DNA of 63,932 bases from Vitrella brassicaformis CCMP3155 (lineage: Eukaryota > Protista > Chromerida). The notes below the pieces were generated by a model, which worked only from the letters and a program-made list of their open reading frames with translations, was not told where the DNA came from and did no database searches. This document shows positions 5,201 to 57,097 of this stretch, piece after piece. Position 1 is the stretch's first letter; the number at the start of each line of letters is the position of its first letter. The stretch spans positions 1-63,932 of the forward strand of contig CDMY01000275.1 in assembly GCA_001179505.1 (NCBI GenBank), written 5' to 3'. Made by a program: the position numbers and the translations under genes.

Positions 5201-5549
5201 CGGAGGCAGCCTCACATGCAGCGTCTCTTACACAGGTATGGTATGGAGAGGGTCAGTCAGTGAAGTGCAGTAGCGACCCCGCAATACCCACCCCAGCCCT
5301 CCGGCTAATCTGACTGCCCGCCTGCCCGCAGCGATTTGTCTCTCTGTGTGTCCCTGACAGTGGACAGGTGTGTGCCCGTGTGCCCTCCTACATGGGTCAT
5401 GTGATGACTAGAAAAGCACTCCATCATCCGGAGGACGACCCGCCTCTGCATAGCAACTGAAAGAAAAAAATCCCTGTCTACCGAGGGCCACTGGTCACGC
5501 AGCATATATCATTACCGCAAAACGGCGTCAAAACGTGCCTGCCCTGCTG
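5201..5549. repeat. ~350-bp dispersed repeat, copy A (inverted relative to 22470-22818)
   Basis: Visual alignment to the reverse complement of 22470-22818. Shared blocks include cagcgtctcttacacaggtatggtatgg, gtgcagtagcgaccccgcaatacccaccccagccctccggct and tccctgtctaccgagggccactggtcacgcagcatatatcatta. Confidence 0.92.
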
Positions 5550-5615
5550 CGAGCCGAACCCCCCATCTATCTATCTCTCCCTCCGTGTCTATCTCTTCCC
5601 CGCCAGACCCGCAGG

Positions 5616-8022
5616 CTAGAACGATGATCCCTCGACCGCTGTAGCCTCGCGTGCTGTGGGCGACACGTCTGGCGATGCTTCACCGTCCGACTCTTCGCCA
5701 GAGACAAACTCATTCTGCCGCACGTGAGCAAAGGCCAGGTGGGCGCGGGCGCCTCGTGGCTGCGCTTCACCACCACAGGGCCCTCGGTCGATAAGAGGCG
5801 CCGACAAGGAACGCCTAAATGGACGGGGCAAGACAACACACAATGTGCACAAGCCGCAACCGGCCGGCTGTCTGTCTCTGTGTTGTTTACCTCATGTAGG
5901 ACCAGCGAGGGCCCTCCCTGGCCACATCCAGGTGAGTGCTGCTCTCGTCGCCCGACACAGCCGTGCGGTCCCCGAGGCCGTCAGAGTATGTGGGCGTCAC
6001 CAACACCGACATGCCGCGCGAGTACAGAGGCAGGCTGCCCCTCTTCAGCAGCCGCATGCCATCGGGAAGGTCGGGCAGCGCCGCGTCGGGCAGGCTGACG
6101 GCTGACTGAGCCACCAACAGAGGGACTTGGGAATCCCTAGATGGGCTGGAGGCGCCTGTGTCGGTCAGCTTGCCATCATGATACGCCGCATTGCCGTCCG
6201 AGAGAGACCGGAACACCGGCTGTCCCACTGGCGCAGCCGGCCTCGTTTGCTGCGCTATCGTCGCTGCCTGTTGCTGCCGTCTTCTCTCCCCCTTGTTCCC
6301 CTCCTCTGTCGCGGCAACGATTAGCGGCACCAACCCCCTCTGTGACGACACATCCACCACGTAATCGTGCGGATGCGGCGGCCCCGATGGCTCCACCATG
6401 TACACGCGCCCCTCGGTGCCCATGGCAATGTCGACCGGCGAGGTGGGGGACCGGCGGTACGCCGACCTGCTGCCAGAGCCCTTCTTGCTGCCAGAGTCGC
6501 TCTTCTGAGGCCTTCTCTGCAGGATGACGGGGACCGACAGAGCGCCAGATGGGAGGGGTGGGAGGGGTGGGGACACCAGGGCTGGCACGGCTGAGTCGTC
6601 CTCTTCCGCCGCGTCGCCTTGGTTGCCGATTGAGGGCGGCAGCGTGTCGCCGCGGTGCTGCCTCCTGCGATCGCTGTCGGTCTTGGCTTGCGACAGCACG
6701 TCGTCGTCGGTGGGCTCCTCAGGCCGCTTCCATGAGATCTTGTGAGTGACACGTGGGTGGGAGTCGGCCCGCTGCCTCTGGAACTCGCTGCTGAGGGGGC
6801 TGGGGACCTCCTTGACGAGCAGACTGTGCCGGCGGATGCGGAAGGCCTTGTGCTCCTCGTCAGATGTGTCGGACGACAACACCTCATCCGCCTCCTCGTC
6901 CCCCTGTTCATGCGATACCGCCGCATCAACCGCCGACTGCTCGCCCACCATGGCCATATCCTGATCCGACGCTGCCGGTGCTGTTGCTGCAGCTGCCGAC
7001 GACGGCGCCGATCCGTCCAGCCAGCGAATGCCGTTGTGTTGCGCCGTCTCGCCCTCCACCTCCATGGCCTCTTCAGGCTTGCTGATGTCCTGCAGTGGCG
7101 ACTCGACCGGGCTCATCAAGTCGGGGGATGGCCGCGGGGTCCATTCGCGAGACGGGCTGGTGGTGCGGCCCTCCGGCGACAGGGGGCTCGTGGGCGCATT
7201 GCCGGCCTCCTCACTCGGCTTGGTCTCCTCTGCGATGGTCTCGGGCAGCCGCGGGTTCTTGCGTGATGCGGCATGGGGCAGAGGAGGGAGGCTGGGTGCG
7301 ATGGCGGATGGGGGGCAAACGGCGGCCTTGCCGGGTGCCGACGATGCGCTGGACCAGATGGTCTGGAAGGCGGTCGAGAGATTGCGGAGGCCGAAGACGT
7401 ACTCCTCGTCGGGCGTCGGGTTGTCTGAGGGAACAACGGTAAGGAGAAATACATGAGAGGCGGTGATTGTGGTTGCGCTTCCCACACGCAAGCACCCACC
7501 TGACAGAAATATCGTGTTGGCGAAGTCAATCATCCGCACGTCGAGCGACTGCATCCAGCCCAGCAACACACCGAGAGAAGAGAGCCACTGTGCCATCGAA
7601 TGCATGAAATGAGTGTGGATGCTGCCTGTCTATCGTACCTTGACCATTTCTCTGGGGTTATCGAGGCCCCCGTCATAGACAATGAGGAGGGACGATGACC
7701 AGAACCGATAATGACGCAACTCAGTCACACCTGATGCACAGACAGACAACACATACACACCCACCCGAGATGATGACACATCCATGCATCTCCGTCCCTC
7801 TCTGTTCATTCACGCACATTGCTGCAGGAGCTGCAGTTTCTCGAGCAGCGGTGGGAACAGGTCGGTGTAGAGCTCGCTGCCATTCCAGAAGCCCAGCTGA
7901 AGCGCCGCCTGCACCTTGTCCTTGGTCACACGCCGGCCCCAATACTTATCCAGAAAACACAACGAATCGCTCTTGCGGTCGTAATACTGCACGCACACAC
8001 GCAGGCAGCGAGAAGCAACGCA

Positions 8023-8058
<36 letters not shown>

Positions 8059-8724
8059 TGTGTACCTGGCATCCGCACAGCCGGAAGCCGAGCGCCCCAC
8101 TGGTGGTGGAGAGGCTCTTCTCCAGCTGGCGCTTCTCCTTGTCGGGGGAGCTGCCCATCTTACGCTGACGCTTACCCATCTTGATATCCAACACACACTA
8201 TACATACCAACACACAGACGACACAAAGCACATGTGACCGACGGAGGGCTTTTCTCTTCTCTGTTCTGTTGGTCTGTTCTTCTCAGTTTTCCCACTGACC
8301 GGTTTGATGAATCCATCGACCAGGTCTTCGAGTATGATGTGCCTCGACTGCTCCGGCTGCATGGGCCCATCCATCATGTCGGTGACGGGCGGGGTGATGG
8401 CCGCCGTCACCTCCACACTCCCGTAGTACTTGGGCACGAACTTCTTGAGAATCTGTAAAGGGCCCGACTCCATGCTCGACGAACCCAACGCCGACAACTG
8501 ACCCACACACCAACACACACAGCCAAAGAGAGAGGCGTCGTGGACGCACACGACTTTCAGTGTGTGCCTGCCTGACTTGAGTGACTGACCTTCTCGTAGA
8601 ATCTGGATTCGTTTTCGCTCCATGGCTTATAAATCTTGCAGCTTGACTTGGGCTTGATGAGCCGCGAGTGGCCGCCCACCTGGTGGCGGTACGGCTCGAC
8701 GTCGGTCGGAAGTACCAACCGCAT
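5616..8724 (-). CDS. Inositol polyphosphate kinase (IP6K/IPMK family) with long low-complexity C-terminal extension
   Basis: Exons give MRLVLPTDVEPYRHQVGGH, FVPKYYG, IILEDLVDGFIKP, MLDIKMG (P-x3-DxKxG region), GFRLCG, SLLIVYDG, VRMIDFA and DEEYVFGLRNL. These are the ordered IPK motifs. Confidence 0.9.
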
Positions 8725-15672: not shown

Positions 15673-16877
15673 ATGGACCGCGAGCAGAGCACCCATTCGC
15701 CATCGCGGATGAATGCTCCTCGAGACTACCAGCTGTGGCTCTTTGACAGAGTCAAGAGGGACAACAGCATCGTCTTCATGCCAACAAACACAGGTATGCA
15801 AGGCCGCACTCAACGCCCTCTGCGGTAATTCGTGTGTATATGTGTGTGTGTGTGTGTGGATGGATGGATGTGTGTGTCTGCAGGGAAGACCCGCATAGCC
15901 ACGCTGCTGATCGACCACGTTCTGAATCAGCCTGAGTGCGCGTCCAATATCATCGTTTTTTTGGCGCCAACGTACGTCAAGAAGCACTCTACTCCTGAGC
16001 CCACTCATACGCACTCCATTCATTCGACTGTCAGGAAACCGCTGGGCGCCCAGCAGGAGGCCGTGATTGAGCTCGAGACCCGGGCAGGGCCCGTCCTCAT
16101 TCACGGCGATGTCCGCCTTGTGGGACCTGACTCAGGTAGCTACGAAGACACGCACAAACAAGACGGCGAGAAAGTGCGGCGTACACAGACAGTGGTAGTG
16201 TGTGCGCACATTCAGACAACTGGGACGATCCTTTGACGTGGGATCGACTCTTTTACGACTTGGAGGGCAACGCGGCGACGCCATTCACGTCTGTCGGAGT
16301 AGATCAGGACACCCTCAAGTCGTTCAGGACGTCGTGGATGGACGACGCGCAGCAGACCGCCGCTGCTGAAGACGCGTCGGATGTCTACAGCAGCGTGTGC
16401 GGGCCGCCCCGCGTATTCGTGATGACGCCCGCCAAGATGGTGGAGCTGCTGCATCCCGGCATGATTCGCCTGGATAGGGTGGCGCTGATGGTGCTGGATG
16501 AGTGCCACCACGTCAAGGGAGGCGACATGTACTCGTCCATCATGAGAAACTTCTACGATAGGGTGCCGGTGAGCAAACAGGGGGAAACCAAGGCAGATCC
16601 CAACCGGGACGTAAATATGATGGCGCATGTGTGTGTGTGTGTGCGTGTGTGTGTGCAGGTGAAAGATCGGCCACACATCCTCGGTCTGACTGCGTACCCA
16701 TCGAAAGGGAAGGCCAATGCATATGAGGCGATGGCCCAGGATGAGATCCATGCTATCGAAAGAGTGCTGTGCGCGCGACTGATCGTCCCACCAGCAGCCC
16801 TCTTGGAACCCTTCTGCCCCGTAACCAAAGCAAATGAAGATACTGCGTCGCACCAGAGTCCATCGAGTCTCTCTCCC

Positions 16878-16908
<31 letters not shown>

Positions 16909-19900
16909 TTCTCTGTGTGTGTGTGTGTGTGTGTGTGTCTTCAGTCCGTCACGGAGGAGCAGCTCAGATACGACGTGCCGCCCCCAGACAGCCATGCCGA
17001 CTGGCAATCCGTCCTCGACAACCAGCTGTGGGCACCCCTCTTCGCCACGGAGATCCCGGCTGCATTCGACAGACAGGACAAGGAGGCCCTTGCTCACCTC
17101 AATCCATCCCTGACGGCCGACCAGTGGATCGAGAAGGCCAAGGAGCACGTCACTAAACGCCTGGAGGGGGTGAAGGGAAACGTGTCGGTGGTGTTGACCG
17201 ATGTGGGTATCCGTGGGGTGGTGAATGGGCTGACGGTGGTGGCGCAGAAGGGCGGCATCATGGTGGCCGACGACGAGGACCAGAGCAGCGACGCAAGTGG
17301 CCCTGCGCGTAAGAAACAGAAGCTGCCCCCGGACGCAGGTGCCGATACAGACTGTGCTTTTCCCGTTATATGTGTAGAAGAGCTCTTCTTCTCTGGTGTA
17401 TGCAGGTGCGCCACCTGACCTGCTGCAGGAGATCTATCAGCTGCCACTGCAGCTCCTCACCACAGCCCTTCAACCAAGACCAACAGGCGCCGCTCTGGTC
17501 GCCCCACCCGATGCACCCGGCCCCTCGCCCGTCCTGAGCGATCACATGATGGACCTCCTCCTGACTCCCAAGGTCAAGCTGCTCCGCGAGACCATCCTAG
17601 ATGCACTTGAGCCGTTCAGAGTGGCCGGTGCTGGCGACTTCCAACTCTATGGTGACTCTGCCGGCTCGACAACGGCAATCCGCCACTACTCAGCTGCAGT
17701 GCACCAGCTGAAGGTGCTCGTGTTTGTAGAGCGGCGGCTTGCTGCTGTGGCTCTAAAGGCTGTGCTACAGGAGACCCTCCGAGGGCCGGATGGGAGGGGT
17801 CTGACTGTAGAGGTGGTCATGGGGACCAACGCCAGTGCGGCGGGCAACCCTGGCAAAGTGGAGTTTGATGGTACGCACGGAAGGGCGATACAGGGAGTGT
17901 GGGAGCCCTTCTTCGTGCGCCTGCCTGTGATGTGCAGCCAAGGCCCAGGACGCCATAATGGGTCGGTTTCGGGACACCACAGCAGCAGGCATACAAGTGC
18001 TGGTACGTACGGACACACGACCACAGGCAGGCAAACGGAAGATGAATCAATCGCTCGTGTGCGGTGCGCATGCGTGTCTGTCTCATCCCCTGGCTGTCCA
18101 GATCTCCACCAGCGTGTTAGAGGAGGGCATCGACGTCCCTCTCTGCAACTGTGTCGTCCGCTTCTCTCCCGTCGTCACCGGCAAGGAGAACGTCCAGTGC
18201 CGCGGCCGGGCGAGAAAGGCCGGCTCGCGCTACATCCACCTCATCCCCAACTCGCAAGACGGCATCGCAATCCGGCACCGACTGGCGAGCTATCAGCGAT
18301 TTGAGACGCTGCTGAGAGAACAGGCCAAGGCCAACCAAGAGGCGGCCATGAGAGGCGAGGGCGGAGCGGTGGGGGCTGGGAGGGCGGTGGAGAGTCCGTA
18401 TGTGACTGTGGATGACGTGGAGAGGGAGGCCGGTGTGCGGCCGCTCTTTGTGCCGGCGACGGGCGCTTATGTGCCGCCGGACAGGGGATTCGTCAAGGAC
18501 AAACTCTACAAGTGAGTGGACAGCTGACGGCTGACCTACAGCCATGCATCTCTGATTCTGTCTTTGCTCATGATGTAGGCTGTATCATGCGTACAATCCG
18601 CTGTCTGGCAAGTACGAGAGCGTCTACGGCATCATGGTCCTGGAGAAGGAGAAGGAGACCCTCTCCTACGACCCCTCCACACACACCGCCACACTCACCC
18701 TGCCCGCATTCAAGTAAGAGTGCAGACCCCCATGCGCCTCAGTGGCACAGCAGCAACAAGGGGCCAATGACGGCGACACCATGATTGTCACGCACACGGG
18801 GTGGAGGAGAGCTGTCGGCCGCCTGGGCGGGGAGGAGAGCCCCAAGGAGCTGAAGGAGAGGGTCATCATCGGGGTGTACATGCAGGCCCTGCAGACCCTA
18901 CACCAGGTGAGAGCGGGGGGAGATTGATGCGGTCGGTCGGTCGGTCGGTTCGTGTGTGTGGATGGGGTGGGATGCGTGTGTACGTATTTGTGTCAGATGG
19001 GTATCATAGACGACCACCTGATGCGATACGGCAGCATCGCACGCCAGCACTGGGAGAAGAAACGCAGGAAGTATGGCCAAGCCATCACTCTGCCACGAAA
19101 GGTACGTCGTAGACACGAAGGTCATCGAAACCCCATCCCATCTGCCTTTCATCCTTTCCGCCTCTCTCTCAGCCTCCGCTTTGCACATCGTGGCCTGATG
19201 GCATCCTCCCGCACCACTTCGCCCCCTCCCCACCCCCAGCCCCCTCCTCGCTCCCCTCTCTGCTGCTGCACACGCTGTCATTCTCGCCACCAGGCAGCCT
19301 GCTGCACTTCCCTGACTACGGCGGCCTCATGGGTCGCTACAGAATGGCGGATGGGGTGAAGCACAGGAGAATTGTCACGCCGGTGGGGATTGTGATGGCG
19401 GCTGGGCTCGTCGGGGGCGAGAGCATGGTGCTGGACGGGCTGTTCTACCCGATGAACAACGAGGCGTTTGGCGTGGAGGTGAGGCGAGAGGCCGAGGTCA
19501 GCGTCACGATAGAGTAAGCGCGGAAGCTGCAGGTGGGTGGGTGGGATGGTGGGCATGGATGTGTGCATCCGGATCGGTGCGTGGGTGTCATTGCAGGTGT
19601 GGACCAACAAGAGCTGCCGCCTTCTCGATGTCAAGAACTTCATCCATTGGGGGGGCCAGGGCCAGCAGCACCCGACCAACATCAACTCACTAATGGATGT
19701 CGACGCCTCAACCGACCGTGACCCCCATCTTCCCCCTTTCGCCTTTGCGGCCCCTCTCGACTCATCTGGCAAGGCCATCGACTGGCGATTCGTCGACGCA
19801 GCGCTGGAATACATCAACATGTAGGGAAAGAAGCTGCCGTGCGGGTGCTTTTTCTCTACACACACTGCGCCACGTGTGTTGTCATTCAGGTACGAGAGCC

Positions 19901-22296
19901 AGACGAGGCGTCAGGGGCGGATGGCCGTACCCAGCATGGTGGCGGTGAGGGCGGCGTCCCACGGGCCGGCAGCCGCCATGCTGGAGGCTCTGGGCTCACG
20001 CAATGGCGAGGAGCAGATGGCCCTGTCGCCTTCCAAGCGGACCAAAGCCCGGCGCTACAGATGGCACACGTGGGCGAGGAGGGAGGGAAGGAGAACGTCA
20101 GGAGGGATACATACCCATTTGTGTGTTGCTGCGTTGGGTGTGTTGGTGTCTGTCTGTCAGTGTGAGGGGCATTGTTGAGAACGAGAACGCATCCACTTTT
20201 GCTGTGGAGGATGGCCAGACGCTGCAGCAGTACTGCGCTCAATCATGGTAAGCCGGACGGACACACAGCCAGAGAGTGCCCGCGCTACACGGCTGCGCTG
20301 CAGTTGCGTGTTGTGTTTGTGCCTGTGAGCAGCAAGCACATGACTGAGCGCTTCGATGCACCGTTCCTCGTAGAGGCAGACCAATTCAGAGGGGTGGGTG
20401 TGGAGAGAAGAGACGCTCGCTCACTCATATCTGGTAATACTTGTGTTGTGTGGTTGCTGACAGGGCACTCGCAGTTTGTTGTATGAGGAGGAGAAGCTGC
20501 GCCCGACATCACAGCTGCGGAAGGACCGCTACCACCCACCAGAGCTGCTCAAACTCCTGCCACTTACCGCACCCATGGTATACACACCGAGAGAGAGAGG
20601 AAGATGGCGAGACGACTCTCCACCCATTGCTGCCTCTAATGTCTGCAGGCCGAATCGCTGACGTGGCTGCCCTCCCTCCTGTACCTGATAGAAGTGCAGC
20701 AGGCCATACAGGAGTTCCGCCACACCCTGCTCTCACGCCTCAACGACCGACTCAGCTCAGTCGACCAGACCCAGGCAGCGATCCATCTCGACTATGGCCG
20801 CCTCGTCGAGGCGTTGACGTGCCCCCTGCTCAACTCGCAGATTGGGGCGACCAAGGACGTCTTGGTCGACTGGCGGGCTCCCGCTGATCTGCGCCCGAGT
20901 GGGTGTCGGTCAGACTACCAACGACTAGAGGTGCGTGCAGCCGGCTGGCTGGCCTTCTGCTTGTGTTTGTGGTGGTGGTCACGTTGAGATGGCGTCTGTG
21001 TTGTCTTGAGTTGTGTTGAGTGCAGTGGTTGGGGGATGCCGTGCTGAAGTTCCTTGCCAACCTTGGCGCCTACCACGCGTGCGAGGGCCGCGGGGAGGGG
21101 CCCATGACGTCACTGTCCAGCCAGATGAAGGCCAACGAATACCTCCGCAAGTACGTGAGAGCACGGGAATCTTCGTGCTTGCGTGTGCGTGCATCTTTCC
21201 TGCATCCAGGATGTGCAAGGAGCACCGCTTCTACGAGTACACGTGGGCCCAGCCGTTCAGCCGCAGGCGGACAGTCGAGTCTACCCGAGCACAGACCATC
21301 GGCGACAAGACACTCGCCGACATTGTCGAATCCATCATGGGGGCCATCTACCTCTCCAACATACACCACGATGACACCAAGATAGAGGTGCGCACACCCC
21401 CACCCCCCCTCCACACACACAGAGAGAGAGCAGGTGTCGTATGGCTGCATGACTTGCAGGTCGATGATGTCGCTAACGATGCCCCTGACTACCAGCGGGG
21501 CGTAACAGCTGTAGCCGCCTTTGTCGACACCTTCCTCCACATGGACGACATGCCCTGCCTGCTGCCGCTGCTCTATGCGCCGACGGCCAACGATACGGCG
21601 ATGGCCAACGGTGCTGGGGAAGCGCGTGATTTGGGGCCGATCGAGGCCATGTGGGGGCGGCAGTTCCACGACCAAGGCCTGCTGAGGAAGGCGCTCACGA
21701 GCCGCTCGTGCGTTGGTGCGGGTGTGTCGAGTGCCGCCCAGACGAACGAGGAGCTAGAGTTCGTCGGCGATGCCGTGCTGGAGGTCCTCGTGTGCCATCA
21801 GATCTTCTTCGACGACACGCCGGCCGCCCCGTCGGCCGCCGGCGAGCTGATATCCGTCGACCCCCTAGATACGGAAGAAGGTACACCACCCATACAGGCA
21901 CACACATGACGACCATGGCAAGACGCCCTCTCTCATCGTGCCTGCCATGGTGAATGGGCGTCTGTAGGTCGCCTCACCGATCGAAAGAAGAGCTTGCTCT
22001 CCAACAGACACCTCTGCGAGCGGCTTCTGGCGCGCCTCCGTGACGCACCGTCCGGCCGTCTGTGCATCAGCGACGTGCTGAGGGTGGGCAATGCGGCGCA
22101 GCGTGATCATCTGAGGCAGCTGCAGATGGACTGGGAGGCGAGGAGGGAGGATTGGTCAGCGGGGCGTGAGGAGAGTGGCGTGAAGCATGTGGGGGACCTC
22201 TATGAGGCGCTGGTGGGCGCCACGTATGTCGATAGTGGCGGGGACCTGCTGGCCGTCTGGCGGGTGATAAGTCCCGACACTTGTGTGTGTAGATAG
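15673..22296 (+). CDS. DCL: Dicer-like protein: DExD/H helicase, dimerisation-like region, degenerate PAZ-like region, RNase IIIa + IIIb
   Basis: RDYQ, PTNTGKT, IIVFLAPT, VLDECHH, ILGLTA, VLVFVERR, STSVLEEGIDVPLCNCVVRF, VQCRGRAR. PAZ-like TLQQY...FLVE...PPELL. RNase IIIa YQRLEWLGDAVLKF...LADIVESIMGA; RNase IIIb NEELEFVGDAVLE...VGDLYEALVGATYVDSG. Confidence 0.95.
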
Positions 22297-22469
22297 CCTA
22301 GCCCGTGGTCGGTGCGGGACAGGCGGGCAGTCTTGTAAGTAAACGATTTTCCATGAGTAATATGTATGTAATATGAGGGAGCTCATGATAGAGTGTATGC
22401 GCTTGGCCACTGTGCATGTATCTGTCTTATGTGTCTTGGGTAGGTCATGTGCCCTGCCCGTTTTTGTCA

Positions 22470-22818
22470 CAGCAGGGCAGGCACGTTTTGACGCCGTTTT
22501 GCAGTAATGATATATGCTGCGTGACCAGTGGCCCTCGGTAGACAGGGATTTTTTCTTTCAGTTGCTATGCAGAGGCGGGTGGGTCGTCCTCCGGATGAGT
22601 GCTTTTCTAGTCAGCAGTTGACCCATGCAGGAGGGCACACAGGCACACACCTGTACACTGTCAGAGACACACAGAAAGATAAATCGCTGCGGGCAGAGAG
22701 ATAAAAGCCGGAGGGCTGGGGTGGGTATTGCGGGGTCGCTACTGCACTTCACTCACTGACCCTCTCTCCATACCATACCATACCTGTGTAAGAGACGCTG
22801 CACGTGTGGCTGCCTCCG
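22470..22818. repeat. ~350-bp dispersed repeat, copy B (reverse complement of 5201-5549)
   Basis: See copy A; starts ~174 bp after the Dicer stop codon. Confidence 0.92.
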
Positions 22819-50464: not shown

Positions 50465-51057
50465 CTACCCTCCCCCCTCCTCCCTCCCATGTGCACTGGA
50501 GAACAAGTCCGGAAAAGCCCACACAGATGAACCACGGCCGCCCAGATCACCACCTGCCCCCCTCTGCTGCCGCACACCCGAAGGCGACAGTCGGCTACTC
50601 TCGTCCTTGCTGGCCAGAGGGGTGGTCTGTGCGTCGGTGCCTGTCAGAGGTCGCTTCCATATGTCGCTGAGAGGCACCGGGCGGTCCTCGGCCTTGTTAC
50701 AGACAGCCGACAGACCAGTACTGGCGTCCCATGCGCTGCCGAGGGAGGGCGAGGGAGAGGGTGAGGGGCTGGACGGCTCTTTGTGGTCGTGTGTGGGTGA
50801 GGAGGAGTGGAAGGGGAGGGCGGGAGAGATGTCCATGGCAGAGAACAGACGGGCCAGCTCCAGCTGCTCCTGGGAGCAGCAAATAGGAGGAAAGAGCGAA
50901 GAATGACCGTCGGTTGTGGGCCTTCTTGTGTGGCAATGCATTCGTGGGTGCGGCCGGGCTGGCTCACCTTGACGTGTTTCTGTGCGTTTTCCTGGTCGGA
51001 CTCCCTCTCGCGCCGACGGTTCTTCTTGCGCTTGGCGTGGGGGTGGTGACCTGACAA

Positions 51058-51092
<35 letters not shown>

Positions 51093-52792
51093 AGCGCCCA
51101 TGATAATCGAGGCCAAGCAACGGCTCCTCTGTGCGTGGGTTGGCTCACAGAAGAGGCATAGGAAGCCGTTCCTGCATCCCTTGGTGTGGACGAATGCGCA
51201 CGGCTTGCATATGCCCTCGTCATGCAGCGGGGCCATGGAGCCGACAGACAGCAGATTGCCGTTGTCGTCCCGCGGTATCCTGCTGATGAGCTTTGGGGTT
51301 ATCCGCAGGTTTGGGCTCAACGCCCCCGTCGACAGGGCCACAACAAGCTGAAATATGGGACAGACAGACAGCCAGCAGACGCAGCCAAGAATGCACCACC
51401 GACGAGACCCATTCGTGTGTGTATGTGAAGGAAAGGGGCCTACCTCTTGCACGACGTCGTCATCGTCTTCTCCCTCCGTGCCGTCCACACCAGACAACAA
51501 ACCTTCCTCACACCTCGGACCTTCACCCGGCAGACCATTATTCCCACTCAAGCCCCCAGCCCGCAGCCCAAACAGCCCCCCCATTGCAGGCGGCGAGAAC
51601 ACCTCCTCGTTGGACGAGGCTTCGCTCGCTATGGTCCGGCTAGACACAGCGGCCGACACGGCCACAGGGGTGGGCGACAGGGGAGAGGGGGAGGGGGAGG
51701 GGGCCGACTCGCGGTCGAGGGGCAGCTGGGGCGGCACCTGCTGGGTGTGGTCCAGAGAAACGCTCCTCCTCTGCATGAAGGGGGACGTCGAGGGGAACAG
51801 AGACCTCTCAACGAAGTAATGATAGTGCGGCGTGTCGTCAGTGGGGAAGGGCTGTTGTGCGATGGTGCGGCCTGCCGCCGCGCCCGCCTCATACGACGAC
51901 ATATTGACCAGAGGGGTCAGGCCGTCGGCAGCAGAGTGCACGGGGAACGACGATGCCGCTGCCGCTGCCGCTTTGCTCGCATAGCTGTCGAGGGTATATA
52001 AGTAGGCCGTGGGATGCTGCCGCAAGACCATCCTCGCTTTGGACGGACGGTCCTCTGGCGTGTAGGGCGGGGGAGGGGGTGGAGGAGGGNNNNNNNNNNN
52101 NNNNNNNNNNNNNNNNNNNNNNNNNNNNNNNNNNNNNNNNNNNNNNNNNNNNNNNNNNNNNNNNNNNNNNNNNNNNNNNNNNNNNNNNNNNNNNNNNNNN
52201 NNNNNNNNNNNNNNNNNNNNNNNNNNNNNNNNNNNNNNNNNNNNNNNNNNNNNNNNNNNNNNNNNNNNNNNNNNNNNNNNNNNNNNNNNNNNNNNNNNNN
52301 NNNNNNNNNNNNNNNNNNNNNNNNNNNNNNNNNNNNNNNNNNNNNNNNNNNNNNNNNNNNNNNNNNNNNNNNNNNNNNNNNNNNNNNNNGTGGAGGAGGG
52401 AGTGGGGGTGGAGGGGGCGGGGGAGGGGGAGGTGGGAAGAGGGATCCAGACACAGAGCCACTATCCACTGCATGCAGGTACCCGCGGCCGTTTCCCTGTC
52501 GACTCGTCTTGACCATCGATGGCTGACGACTTGGCGGTGGCGGCGGGTCACCAGCAGCATGCTGCCTGAGCGATGATATGGGAAGAGTCAGCCTGTCGCC
52601 GTTCTCCTGATCCCGCTGCTCCACGCTGCCTCTGAGGGACGGCGCAAAGACCGGCGGCGGACACAGAGTGCGCGACGATGCTGTTGATGGCACATGCAAA
52701 GCGGCCGAGTGATGAGAGATGGCGCTCACGACGGACGAGGCCTCCTGCCGCTCTGCTGCCGACACCTGCCGCCTCTGCTGGCCCCCTTCCAT
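50465..52792 (-). CDS. Low-complexity protein with C3H1-type zinc finger; spans a gap
   Basis: GSMAPLHDEGICKPCAFVHTKGCRNGFLCLFC|HH (C-x8-C-x5-C-x3-H-like) within S/P-rich sequence. Ends approximate. Confidence 0.7.
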
Positions 52793-52933
52793 CGCCGCGA
52801 GAGCAGGCGGAGGACGATATCAGAGAGGCCGAGCGATAAGAGCTTGAGAGAAGAAAGCCTTCGTTGGCGCCATTCTGTGCACGCCCACATACATCCCTTT
52901 TAGCGAGAAAAAGGCGCGGGCGAAATGCAAGCT

Positions 52934-53796
52934 GCCCTTTTCTGTTCTGCCTGGCCTTCCAGCCTGCCCTCCGCAAGCTACAAGAGCAGTTCCCCGACGC
53001 GCTCGTCGCTGGCTTCATGGATGACGGCCTGGGGGGCATGGACGAGTGGGTGGTGGCCCCCTTTCTGACGGCGGCCGCAGCGGAGTTTCTGGCGGTGGGC
53101 TTGGCGCTGCGCTTGGACAAATGTCGAGCGTGGTCCCCTCACTGGCGCACACCTGCCGACCTCCCCACAGCCATCACTCGCCGCGGCGTCCGCGCGTCCA
53201 CCGACGGCATCATCATCCTCTCTGCCCCGATTGGCACGCCTGCCTTCGAGGACCGCACTCTGCAGGCCATTGTGGCCGGCCATCAGCGTCTGCTCGACGC
53301 GCTCGTCGCCTGCAGGCGTGCAAATCGGGGCAGAGAGGATGATGATGCCGTCGGTGGACGCGCGGACGCCGCGGCGAGTGATGGCTATGGGGAGGTCGGC
53401 AGGTGTGCGCCAGTGAGGGGACCACGCTCGACATTTGTCCAAGCGCAGCGCCAAGCCCACCGCCAGAAACTCCGCCGCGGCCGCCGTCAGAAAGGGGGCC
53501 ACCACCCACTCGTCCATGCCCCCCAGGCCGTCATCCATGAAGCCAGCGACGAGCGCGTCGGGGAACTGCTCTTGTAGCTTCCGGAGGGCAGGCTGGAAGG
53601 CCAGGCAGAACAGAAAAGGGCCCGCCGCATCGCCTTGCTGCACGCCCTGCTGGCTGCTCTCTTTGAGAGTCTTGAAAGCTTGCAGGAGTAGATGCCTGCC
53701 GAACCCCTCTCTCGTACTGTTTTGCCGGCGCTCCCTGCAGATCTCCCCCCTTGAGAGGTGAAATCGGACGAGCAGAACCCACCGGCCTTCATCCAC
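52934..53796. mobile_element. Non-LTR retrotransposon reverse-transcriptase fragments arranged as an inverted fold-back
   Basis: GVQQGDAAGPFLFCLAFQPALRKLQEQFPDALVAGFMDDG...GLALRLDKC...IILSAPIGTPAF is encoded on both strands. Arms 52934-53243 and 53312-53621. Confidence 0.88.
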
Positions 53797-53811
53797 CGTG
53801 CAGCAAGGAGC

Positions 53812-54737
53812 ATGTTATTTGTCTGTCCGCTCTACCTCGCCCTCCTCCCCTCCCTCCTCCCACATCTCATCATCCTCATCGCCCTCCTCCCGCCCTCCTC
53901 CTCGGCCTTCGTCGTGCCGCTCGGCAGGGTCGCCGTCTCATCCTCCTCATCGCACAACCCGCGGCACACCGCACTAAGGGCTGAGAGTGAGCAGGCTGTG
54001 GACTTTGACGAGGCGGTGGAGCTGGTGAACGGGCAGGGCACACCGCTGCTGGTGGACTTCTTTGCCAGATGGTGGGCAACCGGGCTGGACACACGCACGC
54101 ATGTGTGTTGCGTGCTTGCATTGTGTTGTGGTGACACAATTGTGTGTCGGTTCGTTCGGTTGTGTGGGTCTGTCTGTGTGCAGGTGTGGGCCTTGTCAGG
54201 TGCGCACTCGCACAATCCGTGTGTGAGTCTCTTGCCGATCGACCGACTGCATTACTTCCTTATCGCATCGTGTGTCCGTCTGTCTGTCTGTCTGGCTGAT
54301 GTGTGCTCCCTCCCATCGATTCGATGAGTGAGTTCAGATGATGTCGCCAGTGCTGGAGAGCGTCGCGCGTGACCTCAAAGGCAAGCTGGTCGTGGCCAAG
54401 GTCGACACCGACCTCAACGCAGACATCGCAAATCGATACGGCATTCAGGCACGTGTCATGTCCACACCACGCACACTCAATCACAGGAATAAACGCGCCA
54501 CAGCCGCCATTGTGGTGTGTGTGTGTGTAGGGTCTTCCCACGTTGATTCTGTTCATGGAGAACAAGCCGGTTCACCGGATCGAGGGCTACATGGAGCCAC
54601 AGGACCTCATGCGCGAGCTCGAACCATTCCTCACATCCGATGAGGACGATAGTGAGGGCGGTGATGACGAAGGCAGCAGCACCCAGATGGTCGCAGAGGG
54701 GGGCGGGCAGCAACCTAAAGTCGAGAGGGAAGAGTAG
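53812..54737 (+). CDS. Plastid-targeted thioredoxin
   Basis: Signal peptide ...SSSA|FVVP; LLVDFFARW|CGPCQ|MMSP, VAKVDTD, YGIQ|GLPTLILF; acidic tail. GC-AG intron 54449-54530. Confidence 0.92.
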
Positions 54738-55134
54738 GGCTTGGCTTGGGAGAGAGAGGCGGTAGAGGGAGGGAGGGAGGGAGGAAGGCAGGGAGGCCAC
54801 GCACGACCCTGTTGTGTCGTGTGGTTGGTTTGATGGGATTGTTGGTTAGGTAGGTAGCTGAGTGTTTTTCTCGTGAGGTCTTCAAGTTGTCTTGTCGTCG
54901 TGCAGTACGTGTCGTGTCATCTTGTCTTGTTGCTTTGGATCGCATACATCCAGCTGGGAGAGTGACAGACAGAGACAGCTGGACCGATTCGTGCACTCGT
55001 CCGACATTGATGGGTCCGTGCCAGCCCAGCCAGTTGATTGTGTTCGTGTCAGTCAGTCAGTCGCCACTTGGCCAGGAACGGCGAGAATCCTAACGGCCAA
55101 GCTGGCAGTTGATTGTCGCGGCAAGAATGCGAGC

Positions 55135-57097
55135 ATGCCCGCCCAGTTCAGCAGCACACCTCTCGTCCCCAAGCACAGACGTCCCGCCCACCGGCTGCCC
55201 CGCCCCCCCTGTCTGCTCCACTGCTGGCTGACCCTCTTCTCCCTCTGCGTCGCCTCCCTCCTCGTCACCCTCATCCACCTCCAGTCACACGCAGCTATGA
55301 TGCACACACTCGACGCCGACGAGGCTGTCGTCGAGTGGCTGGCGCCCCGCACCAGCTCGACCAAGACCGTGGCGAGTGGCACCGCGTACGGCGAGTGGCG
55401 GGTGCCTTACAACACGACGGACCTGCCGGCGACGAATTTTGACGACTGGCTGACAAAGGACGACCTCATCAGGGTGCTTTATCAGACCCCCTACGCGCGG
55501 GAACAGGCTGCGCGTGCAGAGGGGGGAGATCGGGGTGGGAGTGGGGATCGGGGTTCGGATGATGGTCGTAATGATGTCAAGGACGACGGCGTCATTTTCT
55601 TTTCGTCGGCTTACAACGGTAGCGAGTCGACGCGGGAGGCATTGATGCGCTCGCGACAACAGAGTGGTCAGGGCAAGACGAAGAAGCGGACACAGAAGGC
55701 AAAGAAGAAGGAGATGCTCTTGATGGTACGTACGTCAAGCGAGAGGGAGGGGAGGAGACCATGACTGACGTCACGTCTGCACGTCTGCCTGCCTGTGTGT
55801 GTGTGTCTTGGTGGTGTGGTGTGCCTGGCAGGGTTATGAGTCGAGATGGACGCCACCGGTGGATGAGCGGATCGGGTGTGGGCAGTCGGGTCTCATCCCA
55901 AGGATACTGCACACCTCGTGGCCAGACAGGAACATCCCCCAGCGATTCAAAGTACGTACGCCAGACGAAATCAATGGGTGCACACACAGGAATGTTTCTG
56001 CAGGGCCCACCTGTCTGTCTGTCTGTCTGTCCTTGTTTATATATGCAGCCGTATCTTGATGCGTGCTATGCCCTTCACCCCTCACCCACTTTCCAGCAGC
56101 ACTTCTACACCCACTCGGGGATCAGACGACTGGTCAAACGACACTTCCCCCACCTGCTCGACGCCTTTGACGCGCTCGACGACGGGAGGAAAGACGACGT
56201 CGGCCGGGCGGTGGTGGTGTGGGTCCATGGCGGCGTCTATATGGATATGGGTCAGTCGGCTCACCTCACACAGAGGAGGGACAGACAGATGTGGTGCGTG
56301 TGGGGACTCATCTCATGCCATGTGTGCATTGCATTGATGGCGTGGTAGCATTCGATTGTGTGCGGTCGATCGAGGATCTCCTGGACCACGCCGAAGAAGG
56401 GGCAAGGGACATCGTCCTCGGCCAACATAACCCCGTCCAGGCGCACCTCGTCGAGCAAATGACGAATTTTCGTGGACCTCCCGTCCCCGTCTCCCATGCC
56501 TTGATCGCCGCCTCCCCCCGCCACCCCCTGCTGCTCACCTACATCAACGCCACCATGGACACACAGTCCGCCGCTAGGTCAGCCTCTCAGGCCATGACGA
56601 TGGCCGTGGAGCAGTCGATCCGCCGGGAGAGACAGGACACCGAGTGCAGTATGGACCCTGCTTTAGAGCGCCTGGGGTCGGTGCTGGTGGTGCCCTATAC
56701 ACACCTGCACCCAGAGGTGCCTTCGGCGAGCCACGTGTACTCGGGCAAGTGCAGAATGGGCGTCAACCAACCAGGGAGGGCGAGACGCACGCACAGATAC
56801 ACCTTTGACACCACCAGCAGCTGGGGCTGGAGCAACCGCAGTGAGGCTGGCGGCAGAATGGAGGTCTTGTCTTTTGTGTATGACGATCTCGCTGACAAGG
56901 AGTGGGCGGTGTCGGGTTGCGGGCTGCTGAGTGAGGCCATGCGCGACCCTCTGATGTTCTACTCTAACGAGACGTACGCCGTGCTGCACTATGACGCCAG
57001 GAATGAGAGCCATGGCGCTGGCAGAGATGAGAGCGAGGCAGCGGTTGATGTGGCGGACCTCACTGAGGGCAGCGCGGAGCTGCTCGTAATGTCTTGA
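55135..57097 (+). CDS. Type II membrane glycosyltransferase, GT32/DXD sugar-binding family (OCH1/SUR1-like)
   Basis: N-terminal TM (WLTLFSLCVASLLVTLIHL); IP..F, FYTHSGIRRLVKRHFP, RKDDVGRAVVVWVHGGVYMDMD, LIAASPRHPLL. Confidence 0.8.

Follow-up and report, generated by a model that had tools for sequence, protein, structure and literature searches.

How did two copies of one reverse transcriptase (RT) segment come to lie head-on between two genes of Vitrella brassicaformis, is the arrangement present in the chromosome as it stands in the assembly, and does it serve any purpose? The stretch of DNA analysed here, referred to as the window, covers positions 1 to 63,932 of contig C275; the assembly totals 72.7 Mb in 1064 scaffolds. 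An earlier note on the window, made from its letters, had described a fold-back hairpin of retrotransposon sequence and had proposed that it acts as an siRNA source against its own retroelement family.

Geometry of the inverted repeat

A base-by-base count bears out the arms of 310 bp with few mismatches and the 68-nt loop that had been described. The arms are complementary at 306 of 310 positions (98.7%), with each position i paired with 106555-i, and the four mismatches lie at 52974, 53079, 53168 and 53233. The same inverted repeat was recovered, independently of the earlier reader, by a repeat search of the window, and no comparable close inverted repeat was found elsewhere in these 63,932 nt. 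Pairing drops to chance level in the 34 bases beyond the arms (8/34). Between the arms, the spacer is itself self-complementary at 19 of 34 pairs, and the perfect 10-bp palindrome TGGCCGGCCA, which had been placed on the repeat axis, is indeed centred exactly there (Table 1).

DNA of element origin extends from 52934 to 53656 and forms an insert of 723 bp. Within it, the sense fragment can be traced rightwards to 53313 and the antisense fragment begins at 53312, leaving a 2-nt microhomology, GC, at the inner junction. The additional upstream RT sequence noticed on the minus arm amounts to 35 nt and the additional downstream sequence noticed on the plus arm runs into the spacer; both match a dispersed copy of the element on contig C278. 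Both arms translate as RT, with the motifs that had been read from the translations (QQGD..GPFLF, FMDD, LDKC and APIG, the last appearing as APIC in the minus arm) and with a Pfam RVT_1 match. An RNA spanning the repeat is predicted to fold at -775.6 kcal/mol (z = -72), as a near-perfect duplex of 310 bp.

Table 1. Features of the inverted repeat and its surroundings, in coordinates of the window.
Feature	Position	Strand	Remarks
Dicer-like gene ORFs	16200..21909	+	Two RNase III matches and a DEAD helicase match; context only, without a physical link to the repeat
Left neighbour, annotated Vitrella C3H1-type zinc-finger protein gene	50468..52031	-	ATG at 52031; transcribed leftwards
Scaffold gap, 300 N	52090..52389	.	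545 bp left of the repeat; bears on trust in the assembly
Plus arm	52934..53243	+	Sense RT fragment, equivalent to C278:136096-136406; ancestral (copy-B-like) bases at three informative sites
Spacer (loop)	53244..53311	+	Downstream continuation of the element, C278:136407-136474; natural quasi-palindrome, 19/34 pairs
10-bp palindrome TGGCCGGCCA	53273..53282	.	On the axis; normal element copies carry TGGCCGGCCA too
Inner junction J2	53312..53313	.	GC with which the sense fragment ends and the antisense fragment starts; unique in the assembly
Minus arm	53312..53621	-	Antisense of the same RT segment; three derived bases in common with C278 copy A; one private change (53581)
Extension of the minus fragment	53622..53656	-	35 nt more upstream RT (..QQGVQQGD); element homology stops at 53656
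Right neighbour, thioredoxin gene	53812..54737	+	Four exons by eye; ATG at 53812; transcribed rightwards

The neighbouring genes

The repeat was said to lie between two divergent genes, and this description holds, with a zinc-finger gene on the minus strand to its left and a thioredoxin gene on the plus strand to its right. Pfam gave no match on the ORFs neighbouring the repeat, and the two genes were named from the annotated protein and from the thioredoxin exons, of which the third matches Pfam Thioredoxin (E 1.3e-5) when the exons are scanned singly. The thioredoxin ATG lies 156 nt to the right of the last element-derived base. Since the genes are divergent, their mRNAs leave the repeat uncrossed, unless a start site lies beyond the repeat or upstream-antisense transcription occurs. 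The expectation that transcription from either side would yield double-stranded RNA (dsRNA) is thus not supported for the mRNAs themselves, both of which run away from the repeat.

Several further observations concern this neighbourhood. With exon borders drawn by eye, the WCGPC active site of the thioredoxin is apparently encoded on a 16-nt micro-exon (54184-54199), its Trp codon being split TG|G by the first intron, and the intron after 54448 would start with GC and not GT; the N-terminus of the protein looks like a signal peptide plus transit peptide. G-rich tracts of the GGGGGAGGGGG type are found at 52065-52435, to the left of the fold-back and beside the N gap, and complementary C-rich tracts at 53824-53914 in the first thioredoxin exon, out of register with the fold-back axis. 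The next gene starts near 55021 on the plus strand. The stretch 55021-56334 (+) is co-linear, at about 70% identity over 463 positions, with a 447-aa protein of an ENA-sourced 3.2-kb contig (P0006), which resembles an ORF read through an unspliced or incompletely spliced sequence of this next gene. Finally, 5246-5552 and 22467-22766 form an inverted pair of about 300 bp at a distance of 17 kb, with three blocks of 91-98% identity; one of its arms lies in the Dicer/PIWI region, and the pair is probably a dispersed repeat.

The source element

By similarity, both arms are assigned to the RT of a young subfamily of an R2-like non-LTR retrotransposon of V. brassicaformis. A search of the same genome returned copies on contigs C278 and C492 that are 99% identical to the arms. 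The minus-strand fragment (53312-53656) corresponds to C278:136406-136061, and the plus fragment together with the spacer (52934-53311) to C278:136096-136474, the spacer being the element's own next 68 bases, as in the C278 copy. The inserted piece is a 416-bp internal RT segment, present twice and head-on. The recent origin that had been claimed for it is supported, as a dispersed copy with at least 99% identity exists for each fragment. The nucleotide search of the same genome also gave upwards of 20 relatives with 72-80% identity, and a protein search gave over 100 RT matches, most of them on small contigs rich in repeats.

The element itself is considerably longer than the fragment. Its open frames start about 4.2 kb upstream of the fragment and about 2.9 kb more element sequence follows downstream, through the end of C278 into C492; the element is at least 7 kb long. 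The earlier note had advised looking for full-length family members; an apparently intact one lies on the minus strand of contig C656 (977-7549), as a single open frame of 2190 codons, 100 of them under a 300-N gap. This ORF has an IBR/RING-like match near its N-terminus and RVT_1 further on. The RVT_1 matches have E values of 3.9e-13 in the C278 copy and 1.5e-12 in the C656 copy, and the best solved relatives of the C656 RT are the R2 proteins 9nl3 and 9dou (E about 2e-4). No Pfam match to an AP endonuclease (Exo_endo_phos) was obtained in 2090 aa of the C656 ORF, in which a 300-N gap hides about 100 residues, or in the C278 ORFs. Behind the RT, a pattern seen by eye recurs in six copies, with a CCHC-like C.C..x..GDH...C, (R/K)H(N/D), R(M/I)D(L/I) ... 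DVT(V/I).HP ... K..KY. This C-terminal CCHC and acidic/lysine pattern resembles, as far as such motifs can tell, the restriction-like endonuclease of R2, CRE and NeSL elements. Searched against the PDB, the C-terminal domain gave no match, either as a single sequence or as a six-sequence profile, and its AlphaFold model (pLDDT 38.6) was too low in confidence for a fold search. The label of an early-branching, CRE-like non-LTR element is thus reasonable at the level of the R2/CRE group, in view of the R2 relatives, the lack of an AP-endonuclease match and the C-terminal CCHC with its D..D.T..K pattern.

The C278 locus (C278:130000-138820) has irregularities of its own. In locus coordinates, the region 5433-8222 is a near-identical copy that is either mis-scaffolded or tandemly arranged: 5433-6193 equals 6828-7588 at 100% (a 761-bp duplicate), and there are two 300-N gaps, the second of which (7589-7888) has a true length of zero, its flanking bases corresponding to neighbouring bases of copy A. 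Copy A carries a private +1 T frameshift inside FMDDGL, and C492:1-739 overlaps the end of C278 at 99.2%.

Arm mismatches and element variants

The near-identical arms do not look like simple copies of each other: at three of the four mismatches they carry the alleles of two element variants. The plus arm agrees with C278 copy B at 53079, 53168 and 53233, and the minus arm agrees with copy A at their partners 53476, 53387 and 53322. Among seven more distant copies, the plus-arm base is found in every one (7/7) at 53168 and 53233; at 53079 it is found in four, and the minus-arm base in none (0/7). From these bases of the distant copies, the state common to the minus arm and copy A is judged to be derived, so that the two appear to share three derived changes while the plus arm keeps the ancestral bases. 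Two of the three derived changes are missense at conserved RT positions, one T to I and one G to C in APIG. The minus arm alone has the change at the fourth mismatch; both arms lack the +1 T frameshift of copy A and a private change of copy B. The beginning of C492 holds a third element variant.

The three variant bases stay together in one consistent phase and are not scattered. Plain self-copying does not predict such a pattern, which on our analysis requires one of three things. The palindrome pairing may have been intermolecular, between two copies or transcripts that served as two templates; a single tract of ectopic gene conversion, at least 155 bp long, could have produced the same bases; or they may be an effect of the assembly.

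How the fold-back probably formed

The axis of the repeat falls on a palindrome that the element already carried. The element has 2.1 perfect 10-bp palindromes per kb and the window 1.2, and the 72-base quasi-palindrome that surrounds the axis pairs at 20 of 36 positions, among the top three of the 4593 centres in the element; a random junction would land on such a centre with a chance of about 0.001-0.002. An axis on a pre-existing palindrome, being this rare by chance, is a sign of fold-back priming or template switching nucleated by a hairpin. It was the sense strand that turned, and the event is therefore not a classical snap-back of first-strand cDNA. The minimum free energy of the natural quasi-palindrome does not mark it as an unusually stable hairpin (z = -1.0), so the argument for formation is built on pair counts and exact centring.

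Palindromes are known to arise by fold-back priming at short inverted repeats (PMC7999016), and a route of this kind is proposed here. What the analysis shows is the geometry of the repeat, its source element, the on-axis palindrome, the junction microhomology and the single-copy flanks. The 3' end of a sense DNA strand, about 35 nt past the element's natural palindrome, would pair back through the quasi-palindrome, its partner being either its own strand or the same site of a second copy or transcript. Extension of the paired 3' end would then yield the antisense arm, and the product would be joined into a chromosome break in the promoter region by end joining or templated repair. We infer both the route of insertion and the copying enzyme, which, as far as the sequence shows, may have been either the element's RT or a repair DNA polymerase.

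Better-known routes fit less well. Ordinary target-primed insertion was rejected for a fragment that is internal, has neither a 3' end nor poly(A) and contains a 310-bp overlap; the two fragments stop about 2.9 kb short of the element's 3' end. L1-type twin priming was likewise rejected, the parts being overlapping, internal and without a 3' end. A search for a target-site duplication found no real one, only GCTG at both borders (52931-52934 and 53653-53656), which is partly element sequence. The fold-back is absent at ten other loci of the family, and the idea that it is an inherent feature of the element was rejected on this ground.

We thus favour, at a little better than even odds (roughly 0.55), an accidental one-off insertion in which an internal RT segment of a young R2-like element, turned at a small natural palindrome, came to lie between two genes. 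The repeat is best seen as retroelement debris, ordinary for a transposon, and not as a new kind of system.

Alternative explanations

The published Vitrella assembly was made from Illumina reads only, with Velvet at k=75 followed by SSPACE, GapFiller, IMAGE, ICORN and REAPR (PMC4501334), and the fold-back might be a product of that process. On this account, hairpin-mediated chimeric library molecules, or a gap-filling error at the Velvet, SSPACE, GapFiller or IMAGE stage, would stand in for a true locus of another form, for example with longer arms or with two misjoined 5'-truncated copies. The several gap-closing steps, the 300-N gap to the left of the repeat and the visible mis-scaffolding of the same element on C278 (the 761-bp duplicate at 100%, with its two N gaps) are in keeping with such an error, as are the arms, which carry the alleles of two variants as if reads of different copies had been mixed; the three variant bases are, however, phased consistently and not scattered. 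The inner junction also speaks against it. A 2-nt junction cannot arise from graph paths at k=75 or from a merge over a 10-bp overlap, so reads with the junction must exist. A GapFiller or SSPACE merge at the 10-bp palindrome was rejected, since it would give a perfect palindrome without a spacer, whereas an asymmetric spacer is present. At each outer junction the element is entered in its 5' to 3' direction, and an inverted pair is therefore required whatever the middle. REAPR mate-pair checks, moreover, were applied to the assembly. The flanks (52390-52933 and 53657-54500) are single-copy in the assembly and the inner junction sequence is unique in it; a 28-nt sequence spanning that junction is absent from metagenome contigs. 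The flanks were also considered as older element sequence, which was rejected because they are single-copy and show no RT similarity. On balance we consider an artefact unlikely.

A second possibility shares its origin with the accidental insertion that we favour and adds a function, namely that the repeat is a working hairpin-RNA locus, in which a transcript crossing it folds, Dicer cuts the duplex into siRNAs and the young R2-like subfamily is silenced. If any transcript crosses the repeat, the resulting duplex would be one that Dicer can cut, as the predicted near-perfect fold of 310 bp suggests, and its small RNAs would match only the young subfamily. The 99% identity to dispersed copies is favourable to such a role, as is the state of copy B and the C492 piece, which are still open across their readable stretches, and so is the presence of a Dicer-like gene. 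The Dicer of which the earlier note had spoken is indeed in the window, as a Dicer-like gene with two RNase III matches and a DEAD helicase match (Table 1), but its nearness says nothing about function. The compact bidirectional promoter region, with the element ending so close to the thioredoxin ATG, makes upstream-antisense transcription plausible, and Mu killer shows that the principle works (PMC3440606).

Against a working locus stand the orientation of both neighbouring mRNAs, which run away from the repeat, and the protein record. A word search of proteins with the 272-aa ORF that spans 53656/53657 and 53311-53314 returned only two ordinary Vitrella RT proteins of about 72% identity, neither of which covers the fold-back, and it yielded no annotated or transcript-derived protein of comparable length that covers the fold-back ORF. 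Only some two to three near-identical target copies are assembled, the other subfamilies being 73-76% identical, and a single locus in a single genome gives no showing of conservation or selection. A literature search for papers on small RNAs of Vitrella or of chromerids found none. We judge a working hairpin-RNA locus to be quite unlikely, and would rate a real silencing role for the fold-back as improbable at best. Its most specific form, a natural 'killer' locus in which low upstream-antisense transcription from the thioredoxin or the zinc-finger promoter would give a 310-bp hairpin RNA and siRNAs against the young R2-like subfamily, we regard as very doubtful.

Least probable of all, in our view, are two independent events without hairpin pairing, in which two cDNA or DNA fragments of two variants were captured head-on at one break, or two 5'-truncated insertions came to lie tail to tail, as the two variants in the arms and the outer ends, which look like the 5' truncations typical of non-LTR elements, might suggest; the junction is nevertheless symmetric about a natural 10-bp palindrome, which independent capture would achieve only by the rare coincidence estimated above, the fragments come from almost the same 400 bp of an element of at least 7 kb and have outer ends only 35 bp apart, and neither reaches the element's 3' end.

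Significance and comparison with known systems

The locus is of modest interest pending read-level and small-RNA data. If its structure is real, it offers a clean natural case of a short palindrome in a mobile element seeding a long inverted duplication, as well as a ready dsRNA template against a young retrotransposon in a Dicer-bearing organism for which we found no published small-RNA biology. If the reading as a killer locus were true, it would be the first hairpin described as taming a transposon in chromerids, algae related to the apicomplexan parasites. If, on the other hand, the repeat is an artefact, fold-backs in the widely used Vitrella reference need read-level checks. In each of its aspects the locus appears to add one more case to known kinds, as a product of fold-back priming and as a potential hairpin locus.

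The source element is like R2/CRE-type elements in its single giant ORF, its RT closest to R2, the absence of an AP-endonuclease match and, as read by eye, its CCHC-like C-terminus with an acidic-residue motif, and differs from them by the IBR/RING-like match at the N-terminus. With L1 twin priming, the locus has in common that a non-LTR insertion contains an inverted segment. In twin priming, however, the two parts adjoin without overlapping, extend to the 3' end and poly(A) and are flanked by a target-site duplication, whereas the parts seen here overlap by 310 bp, are internal and are bordered by no more than the 4-nt GCTG.

The closest mechanistic parallel is fold-back priming as described in yeast and CHO cells, where the turn likewise coincides with a short inverted repeat that was there beforehand, the natural sequence within and flanking this short repeat makes up the spacer, and microhomology is found at the priming point (PMC7999016). 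The classical process leads to hairpin-capped chromosome ends and giant palindromic chromosomes, in contrast to the 723-bp insert at an ectopic single-copy site described here; the arms also depart from the model in differing at sites that track two source variants.

For the possible function, the comparison is with Mu killer of maize, an inverted partial duplicate of a transposon gene that is transcribed from a flanking gene (PMC3440606). Mu killer measures about 4 kb and derives from a DNA transposon; its read-through transcription and the heritable silencing of MuDR have been shown (PMC3440606). The Vitrella locus, known here from its sequence, differs in its 310-bp arms, its non-LTR source and its flanking genes, which point away from the repeat. 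Both are natural inverted duplicates of part of the enzyme gene of an active transposon, situated beside a host gene, with the potential for a long hairpin RNA that matches active copies (PMC3440606).
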